DNA from: Guillardia theta CCMP2712
Lineage: Eukaryota > Protista > Cryptophyta
DNA: 64,000 bases
Assembly (NCBI RefSeq): GCF_000315625.1
Contig: NW_005434606.1
Coordinates: 185,154 to 249,153, forward strand
Direction of reading: 5' to 3'
Shown here: in pieces, positions 7,811 through 16,635 of the stretch
How the letters are laid out: the number at the start of each line of letters is the position of its first letter
How positions within the stretch are numbered: the first letter of the stretch is position 1
The notes under the pieces: model-generated
Databases searched by the model: none
What the model was told of the DNA's origin: nothing
What the model saw: the letters and a program-made list of their open reading frames with translations, nothing else
Made by a program: the position numbers and the translations under genes

Positions 7811-7940
7811 ATAGTCACATGATACGGTTTCGAGCTCGGCGTGACCCTGCGGTGCCGAGTGTCAATCGAGGATGCCGGGTCCCTCGGATCAGATCCTCGC
7901 GTTCTTGGAGGAGCTCTGAGAGAAATTCAGACAAGAGCTA

Positions 7941-10900
7941 TCACATGAAACACCATGATGACACACCTGGAAGGCATACGATCGGAACACGGCGAACAAG
8001 GGAGACAACAGTGGAAGGAAGATGTAGCGGAGGAAGTGAATGGAGACCGTGAAGCTTCAGGACCAAGTCAGTCAGAGCAGAGGAGCCCTTCAACGAGCAC
8101 CTGAGCAAGCGAGGAGGGCGGTCGAACTCTTGGATGTAGTGGGCTGTATGCTGAAGAAGGCTCTGCAGTTGCCTGGCGTGATTGTTCCCGATATGCTGCG
8201 GGCTCGCAGCTCGCTGGTCCCATTGCCAGGACAAGGCTGATCCTGGGCCTCTTCCGTTCATACTTGGCCGGTCAGTGTCTAAGTCAAGGCGGTTGAAGGG
8301 CTGGGGGGGCTGGGGGGGCTGCATGGCACCGCCATAGAGGTTGTAAGGAGAGATGGGGTTGGTGTAGTCCGGCATGGGAGAGATAGACTTCCGCGTCTCG
8401 CCCTCCCTCCCGTATGGGTGGAAGGACTGCTGCACGTGCGAATCCTGCTCCCTGCGATAGACCTGCAAGCCAGGCATGCCTGCTGCCATGGGCGGGACCA
8501 GCAAGCCCTGGTTGGAACCCTCCTCCACCTCGTCCTCAAAGTATCTTCTCCTTGCAAAAGAGGCCTCAAACCGCTGCTGAGGAGGGTAGCCTCGACCTGG
8601 GCTCATCTCCCCGGAGCTTGTCATGTCGAATCCTTCTTCCACCGCCATGTCTGGCCGATGGTTCATGTACTCCCCTCCGCTCTCGTGGCACTCGCTGTCG
8701 TGCATGCTCGCGTAGTAGTACTCCTTGTGCAGGAGGTGGATATCGCTCTTCCTCAGATGATGAATGCTGGCAAAAGACAGTCAGGCTGATTGCCTTGCAT
8801 GAGGAGCTGAAGAGTATGAGAGCAAACCTCAGCTTCAGGTTCACAATGGCGAGGAGGAGGATGGAGAACACAAACACGTCGAATCTCGCACGGAGATCGA
8901 ACACGGACAGCTGACTTCCTCCGAAGTAGAGGAAGATGTAAGAGGCATACACCAGCACCGAGACGAGAAGGTATGACACGATGATGTCTCCCTGCTCACA
9001 GTCACGTCCAACCACACTGACCTCTTGCCCCTCACCTGCTTCGACTTGAAACCCGCGTACGATTCGGTAAGTAAGTGCCGGATGCGGCACCACAGCAGCA
9101 AGTCTGGCACCAGCAGGGGTGAGGGGGAGAGCAGGGAGGAGGAGGCGACTTGCCGTCCTTCTTCTGCAGGTTGAGGAACTGGAGGAACTCTCTCCTGCCG
9201 CGGTTGCGAAGCTCAGACTGCGCGCGGATCCACCTCGCCCTATAGCGGAGGAAGGGCTCTGCCTGGGTAGCCGCGCGGAAGAGAACGAGCTTGTAGTAGA
9301 AGTTCAAGTCGTTGTGAAACCCTTGAAGGAGGAGAGTTGTGAGATGAATCAAGGAGGGACGAGAGACTCAGAAGACAGCAGGGGAGGGGAAGGGAGGGGA
9401 GGGGAGGGGAGGGGAGGGGAGGGGAGGAAAACAGTAGACGAGAGAGGAGGGCGAGGAGAGGAGAGTGCATGGGAACTAAGAACCAAGACAGGAGAAACAA
9501 GGCAGGGGCGGGGACAAGGCCCGGGGGTTTACCAGAGAGAGTTGTGTAGAGGAGTCGATAGGTCAGGTATCCCGAGATCGCCATGGATGGGACGGAAACG
9601 AGAAAATGGACCCACTCCCTGCCTCCGCACACCCAGACGTAGAGCTTCTCATACCTAAAACCCCATCATTGCGATGCCAGCAACTCGCTCTCCTCCCATC
9701 TCCTCCCTCCTCTCCTTGCTCTGCTCCGTTCTACTCCCTCCCCGACTTTCTTCGCACCCTCGTCTTCCTCCTCTTCCTGCTGTCCAATTACCAGAGAAGT
9801 TCAATCTCCGCAATGCAGACGCCCGTAGCCTCGTTGGTGACCGTCCGTCTACAGGAAAGTGAGGAGGAGGAGGAGGAGGAGGAGGAGGAGGAGGAGGAGG
9901 AGGAGGAGGAGGAGGAGCGAGTACATGAAGATCCTGTGGAGGACGGGGATGATAGCGTGAAAGATGCCAGCCATGCCCGACACGACTGCACTGAACCAGC
10001 GGAAGCGAGAGGCAAAGAGGATGTCAGCAATAGCTCCGATCTGATCGACCGCGTGCCCTCGGGCGTGTGGGCCCGGAACGCAAAGACAGCCTGGAGCAGG
10101 AGGCGTCACAACTCCCGACTTGCTGAGGAGGAGGAGACCTGAAGCTCGTTGTGTTTGAGCTCAGAGGACATGGCAGGATTCAGCCTGAGGGGAAAGAGAG
10201 TCATCCCGTTGATCCCTCCAGACGTGCCCTTCCTACCTGCGTAGAACCAACTTGGGATGCTCGTAGCCTGAGATGGTGGCGATGTACATGCCGATGATGA
10301 TATAGTTGCCGATGGGAGACAAGACTTCCATGACCGAGACGTCTTGCATGTGCGATTGAAACATGATGTAGATGACCAGAGAGAATATGCAGGGAACCCA
10401 CTAAGACAAGGCAAGTCAAGCAAGCCAGAGACATCAATTTGTGAATTCAGCGTGAGGCATGACAAAGAGCCAGGACGAAGAGAAGCAAGAGCAAGAGCGG
10501 GAGCGGAAGCAGCTAACGGCCTGACCTGTGTCATGAGGTAGATCTGAAAAGAGTCGAAGGTCGTCTTCGGGGGAGGAAGCCACTGCACAAGGGGGTAAGG
10601 CAGAGTCAAGCCGAAGGTTAGAAACAGACCTGGGAATCTGTGAGGATATCGTACAAGGTTGCCTGCTCCTTCCTCTTGAGGCCCCCGATGCTTCCCCTCC
10701 TTGCTCGAGCCGTCCCGTGCTTCCATTCCACAAAGGATCTGACGGGCTCGTTATGAAACCTCGACCAGCCTCCTCCGCTCCCTACACTCCTTCTTACCGA
10801 TGCTTGTCGAGCACCTTGCAAAGGGGGAAGGCGATGAAGGCGAAGGACGCAGAGAAGAAACTTAACCAGAACTTGGACCATTGGAAATGATTCTGAATCC

Positions 10901-13900
10901 GCTCCATCCCAAACAGTTTGCCGATGCGACGATACTCGTTTGCTCTGTCAGAAGGTGAGAGAGGATTGAGGAACGAGGGACGGAAGGGGACGAAGGGAGA
11001 TGAGCGAAGAGAGGGAGGGTAAGAGAGAGCGCGAGGGTAAGGAGAGAGGGAGCGGGGGTATGGAGAGAGGGAGAGCGAGGGTAAGGAGAGAGGGAGTGAG
11101 GGTAAGGAAGGGGAGAGGGAGAAGGAGAACAGATAACAGCGGCTAAGAAGGGAGAAACGAGGTAGGGTCTTGAACCTTTTCTCTAGAACTTCCTCCATTC
11201 CATCTTCGGCTGAAATGCAGAGACAGCGAGCAAATGCGAGCATGAAGTCCTTGCAGCTGAGGGGTACCTGGACACTTGTCAGAGGGTTAGGTGGCTTGGC
11301 CCAAGGCATTTCAACTTCGTCGTCCTCCGCCACTTCCTGCAACGGATCTTCAGGCTCGAGCAGCGCAGAACGCGAGAAAGTCGTCATGGAATACGGAAAG
11401 ACAGAGAGAAAAGGATCAACGTCGAATATGACAACTAGAGACTCGGGCTTACCTGCATGGCCTCGATCAACTTGTTGATGAAGTCGGTGCCACTGAGCGA
11501 GAGGGTCAGCAGATCGAAGAGGTCAAGACCCTCATGTCTCTTTGCTTCTCCACCTGTCATCAGACGCCCAAGACGCGATGTCTCTCAAGTCCGTAAGGGT
11601 GATAGCCTTGCATTTCACACTTCAGCCTCACTTAGAGAATCTCACAGGAGGGCACCTTGTCCCCGTCTGCATCAATCAGGCAGAAAGCGTCATGAACCGC
11701 GCGGATCTGATCGGAGGTTGTGGTGCAGGCAGCATTGGGTGTGTCGCAAACGGGACACGTGAAAGCGTAGAGTAGAGTTTGACGCTCGAAGTCATCGAAC
11801 TCAAGGTCCTTGAAAGACGTGTCAGCTCATCGCATCGCAGACAGGAGCATCGTCTTCAGGTTCGGATGTTTGACAAGCATCACCAGAGCTCGCAGAAGTG
11901 AGTCAAGCTGCTCGAACGCAGAGTCGTTCTGCTTGTGCTGGAAGGGCCGGATGCCTGCAAGAGAGGAGGATGAGAAGGGAGGGGGAGAGGGGGGAGGGGG
12001 GGAAGGGCTGCAAAGATACATGGGATGATAGTGAGGACAGGAAGGAGTAGAGAGACGAGAAGCCGATGGCTACGGCGTGAAACCAGGGCAGAGGTAGGCG
12101 ATTGCGAGAGCAAGAGAGCAAGGAGTATCGCGAGGTGAGAGACAGGGGAGAGAGCGATGAAGGAGACAGGCACCTGAGTCCATCATGGGGACGAGGGTTG
12201 GGGTCGGAGGCTGGAGGGAGCCCTGGGCACTTGTTGAGCGTTGAGGAGGGAGGCAAGGAGGAGCTCACGGTGCGAAAGGAAGCCTGCGAGTGCGAGAAGG
12301 TGCGATTGAACATCATGTTTGGGTCGTCGCCTGACATTGTGGGAGATGGTGACGGTCTGATGAAGCCGTTGGCATACCCCAGCTGGTTCACAGGGTCGCT
12401 CGACCTTCGCTCCCAACCTCCTGGGGTCGTCAGGCTGACAGGATGGCCAGGGGCAGCTTAGAAAACCTTCTGAGCCAAACGATTGCATCGATCGGTACAT
12501 CCCAGCTGACTCGTATGCCGCGTACTCCCGCAGCCCGTGTGGTCTCTTGAGGTCCTCCTCCCCGTAGGGATCCCGAGGAGAGTTCTGCCGGGGACAACAA
12601 GTCATTTTGATTGCAGACCCTCTGAAGCAAAACCTCGTCCGAGTAAGCACGCCGAAAGCAATCTCTGACATACTCCGGGCTGAACTTTTGGTTTCCCCCG
12701 AACGATCCTGATCCTTGAGTCAGCCGGGGGTGATGAAAGTTGAATAGACCACCAGCTTGAGGAGAACGATGATCGTACCCCATGTACTCCGGACACCCTC
12801 GGTCGACTCCTTCCTCGCCGTCATCGTACACCCAGTCGTCCTCCATGTGGCGGTTGGGGATACTGCACCATCACGGGTCAGCCATGAACACGTCAAGCTT
12901 GCTTGAATCACTTGGACACATCCTCCTCGTTATATGACACACTGTGACACAGCACAGTTACAACACAAATCTTGTCGAGAGACGATCCTTTACCTCTCTT
13001 GCCATGCATTCTGCCACTGCACCGGGTCATATGAGTAGGTGTTACTGGGTGTCTCCTCCGCTAGAGCTCGTGCGTCGTGATGGTTCTCTTCAAACTCATC
13101 ATCCGAGTGCCCAGTGCCTGAAGGTTTACAGCTCACATCGTATCGCAGAGCAAAAGACAAGCCCTCCACCATTCTCTCGTACGGCACTCTGCCTCAACTC
13201 TCGTCTCGGTGACTTCAGCGATCTGTTCCAGTCCAACTCTGATTCCGGGACAGTCTCGTTCGATTCTGCACGCACCAACCATGAGCCATGAGCACCACGA
13301 AACAAAGAGCTCGACAAGTGGGTGAGTCCAAGGAGAGGCAAGAGGGAGCAGGAGGTTGGAAAGGGAGCAAGAGGTAAGAGCAGCATGAGGGAGCAGGAGA
13401 TTTGAGAGGGTGCAGGAAGAGGGAGCAGATGGTTGGAGAGGGCGAGGAGGTCGGGAGGTGGAAGAAGTGGGGAGAACCGGATGGCTTGCGATCACTTGGG
13501 AGGTCAGCTCGTGAGTCAGAGGGAACATCCGCAGGCTCTTCCACATCTCGCCCATTGGGCATGTGAGTCCTTGGCTCCTCTCCCCTCCTTGGCTCCTCTC
13601 CCCTCCTTGGCTCCTCTCCCCTCCTCGTCCCGTCCGCATCCTTCACGGCCTCTCGGATAGTCCCGAGATCTTGGAAGCCAGAGCTTCCTCGGGATCTAGC
13701 GAGCCGGTGAGAACCTTCTATAAGCAGCTCATTGTGACCTTTGCCGGGAGAGGAAGCGAGTAGGAGCCGGTGCGGGCTGCCCTTCCTCCTGCTGGGCGTC
13801 TTCAGCCTGCACATTCGGTTTCTGCGGGCAAGGTCAATATTTGGGGATAGGCAGAGCAAACAAGTCAAGGTCGCACGTTTGTCAGCCCATCGTCGCCATC

Positions 13901-14311
13901 AGCTTTCGAGGTAGAATATATCCCAATCTAGAAGGCTCAAAGTCAGAGTACAAGGCTGAACAGCTTCAGAGGACTGACCGGGGTTGAATCCGTCAGTGCT
14001 CTCGACTTGAACTGTTCTGAGAGCATCTGGTTCAACGATTGGATTTGTGAGCCTGTCTTCTCCACGAGAGCTCCTCGAGGATCAGGTGGTGCACTCATCT
14101 CTATCTCCTGCTCGTTTCTGGCCTCGTCATCAGGTCCTCGATCATGGAGCTCTTGTGCCTCAGCATCAAGCATAGTGTCGGCTTCGTCCATAGCTGTCAA
14201 AGAACTGCGCGTCCCAGGTTTGAATGCCCCTATCGCCTACTCGCTTTGCGAAAGCGTCATCTGTATCGAGCCAACGACTCTAGTTGATGATCTCTTCGGC
14301 TCCTGATTCAT
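7941..14311 (-). CDS. Large multi-exon membrane protein: disordered N-terminus, EF-hand-like loop, PHTF/7TM-ion-channel-like multipass domain
   Basis: Spliced segments: AFCLIDADGDK|AITLTDL (EF loop); several TM helices; FLNLQKKD|DLLLWCRIRHLL...GDIIVSYLLVSVL; C-terminal LLQHTAHYIQEFDRPPRLLSFTVSIHFLRYIFLPLL. The 3' end is approximate, and the locus could be two genes. Confidence 0.6.
9861..9917 (+). repeat. (GAG)n microsatellite in intron
   Basis: Direct observation. Confidence 0.95.
13569..13625 (+). repeat. 18-bp tandem repeat x3 (ccttggctcctctcccct)
   Basis: Direct observation; probably intronic. Confidence 0.9.
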
Positions 14312-15165
14312 TATGGTCAAACAGCACAGATTCGTTCAAGGAAGCAAACAGAGCTCTCCAAGATAATCTACAACCCAAACAATAGTTATACAATTGCATA
14401 CATCAACTACAATCTCTCTGAAAGAAACTGTACTCATCTACATTGTCACAATATCTTGACGTAGATTCTGAGAGGACAGGAGTTTATATCTTGTTTCTGT
14501 TTATGTCGTACACAGTGGCTTTTGTCTTTTTTTCATTCACCGTCCTCAACCTTTACCTTTACCTTTACCTGGGCATGCAGCAGTCTACTTTCACTTCATC
14601 AATGCTTCATCCTTCATATGATATCTATCTCCCTCTCCCTCCTCTCCCTCCTCTCCCTCCTCTCCCTCCTCTCCTCCTTCCACATTCCTGCCGCCCTGAA
14701 ATCAGCAACCATCAATTCCCTCGCTAGTTGTACGGAACACCACCCCTCCTTAACAACAACACCTTACCGCCTCCTACCAAGTACCCTGTCATTAGATCTT
14801 GAATGACCGGGTGGACTGACATTTTCCTTCTGCACCCCCTTTGTCATATCGATCTACTACCCCCCAACTTATGCGGAATTAGGATCCGCTAGGTGGTAGG
14901 GGTAGTGCAGGTTTACTCATTCCCCGGGCCCGGGCCCGAGACAGCCGGGATAAGTCCGGGGAACTAGTGAAGTTCATTGTTGATGGTACTGAGGCGGGCT
15001 ACTCCGGGTTGTCCTAGTACAGACGATGCCTCGCCTCTGGTCAGGTACCACCCCTACCCTTTTATTCAGTACTTTTTTCTATGAGACGACCCCACTGTTT
15101 CGATGATAGTTCCCTACCCTACCCCGCTTCAATTCTCCGACTCTTGAGGAGTCCCTCACAGTCGC

Positions 15166-16635
15166 ATGGCCCAAAACAGCGATACCGCCCCTCCCCTTGA
15201 AACCTCCGCCATGCAGTCTTCACCTCCTCCCACCGACCCAGCCATGGCAATGGATCCTGGGCCTTTGTCAGAGGCTGCTGAACCGGCTCCTCCTCCTCCT
15301 CCTTCGGATCCATCAGGCCCTGCTGCTCCAGCTATGCCCTCTGAACAGTCCGGACAAACTGAGTTAGTTGCGAAGAACCTCCTCCCCCTACCCGACTTTC
15401 AGGATGTTCCAACTTCTTCACCAACATCCGACTCTCCTCCTGTGCCTGTGGAGTCTGAGTCTCTTCCAGAAGACAAGGAAGCTCCCATTGAAACGCAGGA
15501 ACCCGTGACAGCAGCTGTTGCTCCTACGTCCTTGAACAGCTCCGAATCAGGTCACGACAACAAGCCCAAAGTCCCTCCTCTTCCTCTGCATGCTCCAACT
15601 CGAAGTGCAACCTCCCATCATCCTTTCCAGAACCTGGTCCCCAGCCCACCTCCTGTTCCTTCAGATTTGGGTACTGGTACCCTTTCGCAAGCTAGTGTAC
15701 ATTCTAGTACACTGCTGCAACCAGTAGCAGGCACGGCGAGCACGCTGAATCCCGAATCCGCACTTTCTCAGTATCTCCCTTCCGGCAATCTGGAACCAGG
15801 GCAGGATGCAAGCTCGAGCAAGGAGACTCGTCCTTTATTCTCAATGTTTCTGGAGGACTCAAGATCTGCTGAGAGGTTCTCATTGACTTGTTCACTGCCC
15901 TGCTTGACATCAATGGCGGCACTTGTGCAGATCTCAAGGAATTCCTCAGCTATACCAGCCAAAGGCTGCTCAGAATGCTGCGTATACTCAATCAACACGA
16001 CTGTTAGTTACTTGTCACGCTGAATCGTTGTACCTGAAAAATACTACAGGTGTCAGGCCAACTTTGACTACAAAGGGAACAGGAAATGCCTGCAATGGCA
16101 AGGACCAAACGATGGAGAAGCTTTGCTCCGAACCGTGAGCGAATGTAAAGAGCTCCTGCTATCGTAACACGTCGCAGGTTGCTCGTGCATACGGGGTCGG
16201 TTTGCGGTCCCCATCCAACCCCCACGGGAAGCTGATTTACTTGACCTCCAGAGACACTCATGAGGTGAAAAGATCGAGCGTTTTGTGTGCGGTTCTTGTT
16301 TGCTGTTCTCATCAAGTATGCAGATCATCGACGTTGATACCACGTTTGTACATGACAACAGTGATTTGATCGTGCACATTGAGCCTGAGGAAAGCGAGAA
16401 TGGTTTCTGCGGAGTTGTAAGCCTGCATGTGTTCCTTCTTGTATATTTTCTAAGAAAAGTGTTTCGTTTGCAGGGCAATGACGGTGGTCCCTTCAATGTG
16501 GTGATGACTCATCATCCGACTTCACCCCGCTGCCCCTTCCTGACTGCTGCCTCAGGTCCCTTGTATCGTTCGATTGTTCACTTGCGAGTATGCCGCTCCT
16601 TCGAGGCGCATCCTCGCGCAGAAGAACTCAGATGA
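15166..16635 (+). CDS. Hypothetical protein with Pro/Ser-rich N-terminus and a small globular C-terminal domain
   Basis: Long first exon, then short exons CQANFDYKGNRKCLQWQGPNDGEALLRT|VARAYGVG...|IIDVDTTFVHDNSDLIVHIEPEE. Confidence 0.5.

Follow-up and report, generated by a model that had tools for sequence, protein, structure and literature searches.

An EF-hand fused to a membrane domain of predicted insect chemoreceptor fold in the cryptophyte Guillardia theta

Outside insects, we know of no function for proteins with the fold of the insect odorant receptors (OR) and gustatory receptors (GR); the plant DUF3537 proteins, the PHTF proteins and the protist members are all orphans. Proteins of this superfamily, the seven-transmembrane-domain ion channels (7TMICs), have as their hallmarks the element TM0, long transmembrane helices (TM) 4 to 6 and a split TM7 (bioRxiv 10.1101/2023.08.30.555482; PMC9998090). 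PHTF proteins are widespread in eukaryotes, protists included, and PHTF-like proteins are defined by a first intracellular loop (IL1) of >300 residues (PMC9998090; bioRxiv 10.1101/2023.08.30.555482). In insects, Orco is regulated via a calmodulin-binding site in IL2 (PMC7881240, PMC5043534). Here, we describe a gene from the cryptophyte alga Guillardia theta that encodes an EF-hand together with a multi-pass membrane domain of predicted 7TMIC fold. The gene lies in a stretch of 64,000 nucleotides (nt), contig 68:185154-249153, which is referred to as the window; the genome searched comprises 87.1 Mb in 669 contigs.

In the reading that we consider the probable one, the gene represents a cryptophyte family with a cytosolic N-terminus, an EF-hand, a TM0-like helix and a 7TMIC-fold domain, which would function as a tetrameric cation channel coupled to Ca2+. 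A preliminary description of the window had proposed a channel of this kind and had not recognized its architecture as described. Our literature search agrees, in that no publication on an EF-hand-fused 7TMIC was found. The text of the 7TMIC surveys (PMC9998090; bioRxiv 10.1101/2023.08.30.555482) is without mention of EF-hands, Guillardia or cryptophytes, and no literature linking Guillardia to DUF3537 or gustatory receptor-like proteins (GRLs) was found.

EF-hand and membrane domain in one protein

A word search with the exon that encodes the long loop of the window gene gave two proteins, i.e. P0001, an environmental open reading frame (ORF) that is 92% identical, and P0002, which has 411 residues and reads unbroken through four of the splice junctions that the preliminary description had set by hand. 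A search with P0002 led to a small family, the named sources of which are all cryptophytes (Hemiselmis andersenii, Rhodomonas salina and Teleaulax); the nearest transcript-derived proteins are from the sister genus Hanusia. When a nine-member profile was run against 1.84 billion representative proteins, only 96 matches were obtained at E<=0.001; almost all were fragments of members of this family, and none had the length or name of PHTF, GR or DUF3537. Within the G. theta genome, paralogs are present on contigs 16, 172, 45 and 5. By sequence comparison, the window gene thus appears to be one of at least five G. theta paralogs in a family that is so far almost only cryptophyte. Exon-sized ORFs of the window gene matched no Pfam family, Pfam models matched nothing but the EF-hand on the homologs, and a sequence profile search of PDB chains gave no match.

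Judged from the coding sequences, the EF-hand is fused to the membrane domain in one gene, as had been assumed at the outset, and support comes from a paralog in a single frame, from Hanusia phi transcripts with both parts in one ORF and from exons of the window gene that splice in frame. In the window, exons 11808-11656, 11606-11554 and 11492-11453 join in frame to exon 11336-11176, which opens the conserved membrane-domain region. In the contig-16 paralog, a single uninterrupted frame of 1140 codons runs from the N-terminal region through the EF-hand and on from TM0 to TM6. In the contig-172 paralog, one ORF holds the EF-hand along with the first part of the membrane region, and the contig-45 paralog has EF-hand-region exons upstream. 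The H. phi transcriptome proteins P0014 (1162 residues, complete) and P0015 (1040 residues) hold both parts; P0014 and the contig-16 frame share 89% identity, with the EF-hand and the membrane core almost unchanged and the N-terminus and the long loop drifting. Both parts are also present in P0045 and P0070. A distant, compact relative without long loops, P0103 (608 residues), carries two EF-hands as a canonical pair at the corresponding place in its N-terminus (41.7-42.7 bits in Pfam), and profile comparison shows its homology to the family (hhalign probability 97%, E 7e-11, 271 columns). For two homologs, on the environmental contig L003 and at locus L004, the called proteins begin immediately ahead of the membrane region. 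That a Met start at this point means that the EF-hand is missing was considered and rejected, as EF-hand exons lie directly upstream at both loci, in frame across a GT-AG intron.

The preliminary description had assigned the membrane domain to the 7TMIC fold, and a structural match of this kind was sought and found by comparing predicted models with the PDB using Foldseek. The AlphaFold models are of the homologs P0003 and P0008, with the window protein represented by its exons in the alignment only. A first run on P0003 with 9 sequences had a predicted local distance difference test score (pLDDT) of 43 and was kept only as a replicate. The P0008 model, built from 38 sequences including the same-genome paralogs and the window exons, reached a pLDDT of 67.8 and a predicted template modeling score of 0.63, with TM3 to TM6 at pLDDT 80-92. 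For P0008, insect gustatory and odorant receptors occupied Foldseek ranks 1-13 with a probability of up to 1.0.

These models predict that the membrane domain adopts the 7TMIC (insect OR/GR) fold. Seven transmembrane helices are packed in the manner characteristic of 7TMICs. TM4 (residues 305-348 of P0008; 44 residues), TM5 (386-403 and 406-431; 46 residues) and TM6 (440-518; 79 residues) are long and reach into the cytoplasm as in the anchor domain. TM7 is split into TM7a and TM7b (575-595/608-633 in P0008 and 649-667/674-703 in P0003) with a conserved Pro-rich break between them, and this break coincides with the last intron of the window gene. In P0008 and P0003, the intracellular loops (IL1 58-64, IL2 80-85 and IL3 133-273 residues) are longer than the extracellular loops (EL1 ~10, EL2 36-43 and EL3 17-20 residues). 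Directly before TM1 and outside the aligned core is a conserved hydrophobic helix with a central Pro (pLDDT ~60), at the position where OR/GR have the re-entrant TM0. As to the sidedness, which in 7TMICs places the N-terminus inside and the C-terminus outside the cell, the positive-inside rule gave mixed signs; IL2 has 13-17 Lys+Arg and the stretch ahead of TM0 is basic, but the TM0-TM1 linker is acidic.

It could be argued that the likeness to OR/GR is that of a generic bundle of long helices, and that the family is an unrelated multi-pass membrane protein, i.e. a transporter, scaffold or enzyme, that has an EF-hand by chance. We consider this highly improbable because ranks 1-8 for two independent models are taken by the full set of eight cluster representatives of OR/GR and by no others, each match spans nearly the whole target chain, and unrelated Foldseek matches cover at most half as many residues. 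Moreover, the models reproduce the split of TM7, an unusual feature, as well as the length of TM4-6, and language-model neighbors of two distant members, which are leads only, independently name DUF3537 (0.90-0.92), 7tm_7 and Trehalose_recp clusters. The Pfam models 7tm_6, 7tm_7, Trehalose_recp and DUF3537 had no match at E up to 10 in the 38 members. Because sequence dissimilarity is usual across the superfamily (PMC9998090), this result does not bar membership by fold. A shape search of the ESM atlas was uninformative (TM-score <=0.43).

The 7TMIC-fold domain had also been linked to PHTF specifically, based on sequence motifs, and this kinship was not supported. That the family is an ortholog group of PHTF, a Class-B 7TMIC, is in our estimation very unlikely. 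The fold class is shared, and the Pfam model PHTF1-2_N (PF12129) has a faint match at a sensible position, over TM1-TM2, in two of the 38 members (best 9.5 bits, E 0.89-1). However, this match is far under the cut-off of 25 bits, and the model finds nothing in the whole G. theta genome, a weak result because the controls were silent too. In addition, the ~58-64 residues of IL1 between TM2 and TM3 compare with >300 in PHTF, the long disordered loop of the family being IL3, between TM6 and TM7a. Finally, none of the 96 profile-search matches is of PHTF length, and the language-model neighbors are DUF3537 and 7tm_7 instead.

A proposed model of Ca2+ coupling

Based on these data, we suggest a model in which the protein would be made up of four parts: a long cytosolic N-terminus of low conservation; a single EF-hand, or a pair in the distant branch; a TM0-like helix; and a seven-helix domain of 7TMIC fold. 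In this domain, the long TM4-TM6 would form a cytoplasmic "anchor", followed by a long disordered loop between TM6 and TM7a and by the split TM7a/TM7b. Conservation in the family is highest in the EF-hand, in TM7a and TM7b and in the portions of TM4-TM6 that extend into the cytoplasm. Because the best-conserved membrane parts are those that make up the tetramer anchor and the pore in insect receptors, we propose a tetrameric cation channel with an EF-hand. By analogy with OR/GR channels, TM7b would line the cation pore of the tetramer. The EF-hand, ~70-90 residues before TM0, would be cytoplasmic, close to TM0 and the anchor, and would couple gating or assembly to intracellular Ca2+ (or Mg2+). 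In other words, it would do in cis what calmodulin does in trans for Orco; a Ca2+-regulated channel is our inference. The more general proposition that 7TMIC channels are gated or tuned from inside by calcium via a built-in EF-hand is tentative, and we regard it as somewhat doubtful.

The EF-hand itself has several features of a metal-binding loop. Read directly from the window, the loop has Asp at positions 1, 3, 5 and 12 and Ile at position 8. Acidic residues at positions 1, 3 and 5 are present in the window and in all five of the main-clade cryptophyte relatives that were read; P0070 has the same acidic positions and Glu at position 12, and P0103 has Ser at position 5 in both of its loops. 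On L003, the Pfam models EF-hand_1/5/6 score above their gathering cut-offs (26.1-26.7 bits). Between Guillardia and Hanusia, the loop is invariant while its flanks drift.

Several observations weigh against the model. In the EF-hand, the window loop has Lys at position 6 in place of Gly and Asp at position 12 in place of Glu, the EF-hand of the window gene is single rather than one of a pair, and the G. theta and Hanusia paralogs score only 15-20 bits, below the Pfam EF-hand cut-offs. Asp at EF-hand position 12 often lowers Ca2+ affinity or favors Mg2+. Taken together, these features suggest that Ca2+ binding is possibly weak or that Mg2+ is preferred. With regard to the fold, the Foldseek E-values are weak (best 0.03) with TM-scores of ~0.4, the evidence comes from predicted models of homologs with 45-75% identity to the window exons, pLDDT is only 50-70 for the N-terminal helices TM0-TM3, and no sequence method (Pfam, PDB or the profile against 1.84 billion proteins) ties the family to any named 7TMIC family. 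The window copy is, moreover, frameshifted in the assembly. Finally, if TM0 spans the membrane, the EF-hand faces the other side. We considered this eight-TM topology with an external EF-hand and judged it unlikely, given that the extended N-terminus (400-500 residues) lacks a signal peptide and that in 7TMICs TM0 is known to be re-entrant.

The deviations in the EF-hand also speak for a different reading, in which the fold is that of 7TMICs and the EF-hand is a structural or dimerization module without calcium sensing, the channel being gated by an external ligand, by voltage or by phosphorylation of the long loop. In addition to the single EF-hand, Asp at position 12 and the sub-threshold Pfam scores in the G. 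theta paralogs, some members have Lys or Met at position 6. Against a module without calcium sensing speak the acidic positions 1, 3 and 5 in the window and in all five main-clade cryptophyte relatives read, and likewise in P0070 with its Glu at 12, a loop that stays unchanged from Guillardia to Hanusia as its surroundings drift, and the fully canonical pair retained in the distant branch (P0103). We therefore consider this alternative rather unlikely, and retain the model with an EF-hand that would sense Ca2+ or Mg2+.

A CxxC motif is present ~25 residues ahead of the EF-hand loop in all members examined (window 11808-11656; L005, L006, P0045 and P0070). This conserved motif may add metal or redox sensitivity.

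Gene structure at the locus and the missing base

The gene was modeled by tblastn of homologs against the window, followed by a check of splice sites and phases based on coordinates only. It is an intron-rich gene on the minus strand, as are all its exons given here, with 17 homology-backed exons between 11954 and 7889. All acceptors are AG; 15 donors are GT and one is GC. The introns are 44-270 nt long, homologs span each junction, and the reading phase is consistent at every exon join but one, at exon 10090-9925. The stop codon is at 7891-7889.

These exons bear out much of what had been read by eye. All three peptide strings quoted in the preliminary description were found on the minus strand by three-frame translation of the DNA; the first covers exons 9321-9154, 9103-9036 and 8991-8828, its first join being the GC-AG intron, and the second covers exons 8766-8101 and 8054-7889. 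The EF-hand loop had been placed at ~11590-11695, and within this range DADGDK closes exon 11808-11656 and AITLTD opens exon 11606-11554, a 49-nt intron interrupting the coding sequence of the loop. The splices made by hand match five independent homologous sequences that run unbroken across those joins. The extent of the gene, given as 7941-14311, is plausible, and the 3' end and the exons from 11954 down are backed by homology. By contrast, the 5' third (14191-11955) is not conserved; it is a chain predicted only ab initio and is therefore treated as tentative; its putative first coding exon, 13979-14191, has an ATG at 14191 and a GT donor after 13979 and comes from ab initio codon-usage and splice scores only.

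The conserved part begins with exon 11884-11954, which encodes a helix ahead of the EF-hand region; it has AG/GT sites and a fitting phase and aligns to P0045 and the contig-16 paralog across the join, and the 75-nt intron that follows takes out an in-frame TGA. Exon 11656-11808 (55-72% identity to P0045, P0014 and P0015) encodes the CxxC motif, the entering helix of the EF-hand and the first half of the loop. The second half and the exiting helix are encoded by exon 11554-11606, where splice sites and phase fit and 16-17 residues are 100% identical to P0014/P0015. A short helix after the EF-hand is encoded by exon 11453-11492, which aligns to P0014/P0015; the same small exon with the same donor is found upstream of the L004 homolog. 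Joined to it in phase 0, exon 11176-11336 (tblastn with P0003, P0008, P0010, P0014 and P0015) encodes an acidic linker and the conserved helix that opens the membrane-domain region. Exon 10798-10944 (64% identity to P0003) encodes a basic stretch and the hydrophobic TM0-like helix with its conserved Pro (hydropathy 1.3-2.0), immediately ahead of the region alignable with OR/GR structures.

The next exons of the membrane domain were placed by homology and the splice check. They encode the TM0-TM1 linker (10630-10690, with an alternative in-frame acceptor 6 nt upstream at 10696), the segment directly ahead of TM1 (10526-10582), TM1, the short EL1 and TM2 (10237-10400, corresponding in the P0008 model to helices 139-162 and 173-197) and the start of IL1 (10139-10184). 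In exon 9925-10090, which encodes TM3 and, ahead of it, a strongly conserved motif of IL1, one base appears to be deleted at ~10054-10057; the donor of this exon at 9924 is weak and hypothetical. The end of EL2 and TM4 follow in exon 9533-9654 (72% identity to P0010). Exon 9154-9321 (78% identity to P0003), which has the GC donor, encodes the portion of TM4 that extends into the cytoplasm, together with IL2; no other stretch of the family is as conserved. The cytoplasmic part of TM5 is encoded by exon 9036-9103 (homology and splice check) and TM5, EL3 and TM6 by exon 8828-8991 (63% identity to P0010). Exon 8101-8766, supported by homology and the splice check and matched by P0001 at 92% identity, encodes the cytoplasmic extension of TM6, the disordered IL3 of ~190 residues and TM7a. 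After a 46-nt AG/GT intron with fitting phase, exon 7889-8054 (75% identity to P0003/P0008) encodes TM7b, which is presumed to be the pore helix, followed by a brief C-terminal tail and the stop.

The join that is out of phase deserves separate consideration. DNA comparison with five homologous loci (L003-L007) shows that exon 10090-9925 is one base short at ~10054-10057, in a fully conserved motif, and in tblastn the two halves of the exon match homologs in two different frames around the invariant motif ahead of TM3. With this base missing, the reading frame of the assembled sequence is broken. Either this is an assembly error or the window copy was inactivated very recently. In the latter case the deletion would be real and would destroy the protein from TM3 onwards, the window copy would be a pseudogene, and the paralogs on contigs 16, 172, 45 and 5 would be the working genes. 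The absence of the base relative to all five loci at such a conserved motif, and the fact that this is the sole phase mismatch among the exons, are in line with inactivation. On the other hand, the remaining 16 exons have open frames, splice sites and conserved residues intact, the environmental contig that is 92% identical over the long loop exon stays open, and a single homopolymer-type assembly error is at least as likely an origin of the gap. We consider a pseudogene unlikely.

Several further features were observed at the locus and at related loci. The window gene has a single GC-AG intron, with the GC donor at 9153-9152, and five very short introns of 44-49 nt (11655-11607, 10629-10583, 10138-10091, 9035-8992 and 8100-8055). 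Intron density differs greatly within the family, in that the contig-16 paralog (L005) has only one intron seen, ahead of TM7b, for the same coding sequence. A long CTC/GAG trinucleotide run at ~9858-9915 is part of the 270-nt intron that separates exons 10090-9925 and 9654-9533; read on the plus strand it is a poly-Glu ORF, which could mislead gene callers. In the 5' third, three tandem copies of an 18-nt unit lie at ~13560-13620, and the ab initio chain reads them, as putative coding sequence, into a repeated peptide rich in Arg, Gly and Glu. On the plus strand, a Pro/Ser-rich ORF of 285 codons (15166-16023) starts ~1 kb from the tentative gene start, which suggests a shared divergent promoter region at ~14250-15100. 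The environmental contig L003, which carries P0003, has plant-type telomere heptamer repeats at L003:1-30, adjoining the EF-hand coding sequence; either the gene is truncated at a chromosome end or the contig is chimeric. Lastly, a 689-codon ORF on contig 13 (644394-647672) has an EF-hand pair at each end with leucine-rich repeats between them; it was picked up through its EF-hands alone and is unrelated to the family.

Implications and comparison with known systems

Cryptophytes have retained several paralogs, and G. theta at least five, which points to a genuine physiological function; phototaxis, chemotaxis, or signaling of ejectisomes and flagella may be considered. The EF-hand fusion hints at how OR/GR-fold proteins are controlled outside animals. 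If 7TMIC channels are indeed gated or tuned from inside by a built-in EF-hand, the insect chemoreceptor fold in algae would serve as a Ca2+-coupled signaling channel, instead of or besides an external chemoreceptor, and calcium control would possibly be recurrent, perhaps ancient, in non-animal 7TMICs. A covalently attached and strongly conserved calcium sensor offers a first concrete and directly testable regulatory hypothesis, i.e. Ca2+-dependent currents or assembly; P0103, with its canonical EF-hand pair, 608 residues and no long loops, is a convenient protein for expression. The family also adds a further protist lineage in which the 7TMIC fold is combined with a signaling domain.

How does this family compare with described 7TMICs? 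Insect OR/Orco and GR (7TMIC Class A; PDB 8z9z, 8jm9, 8vc1 and 6c70) have no detectable sequence similarity to it, and the cryptophyte proteins add an N-terminal extension of 400-500 residues with the EF-hand and a disordered IL3 of 130-270 residues. The plant DUF3537 proteins and the GRLs of unicellular eukaryotes (Benton et al. 2020, as cited in PMC9998090) are likewise non-animal members of this fold superfamily. In the language-model comparison, clusters of DUF3537 rank among the closest named neighbors, while Pfam PF12056 matches no family member, and no EF-hand is reported for DUF3537 proteins or GRLs in the publications consulted. PHTF (Class-B 7TMIC; PMC9998090, bioRxiv 10.1101/2023.08.30.555482) resembles the cryptophyte family in combining a 7TMIC core with long extra intracellular sequence and an N-terminal extension; however, the long insertion of PHTF is in IL1, between TM2 and TM3, while that of the cryptophyte family is in IL3, and no EF-hand has been described in PHTF.

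Two further systems share elements of the design. In trypanosome GRL1, the one domain-fused 7TMIC known, a protist 7TMIC core is also fused to a soluble signaling or interaction domain (bioRxiv 10.1101/2023.08.30.555482), although this domain consists of WD40 repeats rather than an EF-hand and the lineage is a different one. In the regulation of Orco by calmodulin, Ca2+ information reaches a 7TMIC through EF-hands on the cytoplasmic side, as we propose for the cryptophyte proteins. In insects, however, these EF-hands are on a separate protein that binds IL2, while the cryptophyte EF-hand is N-terminal and part of the same polypeptide.

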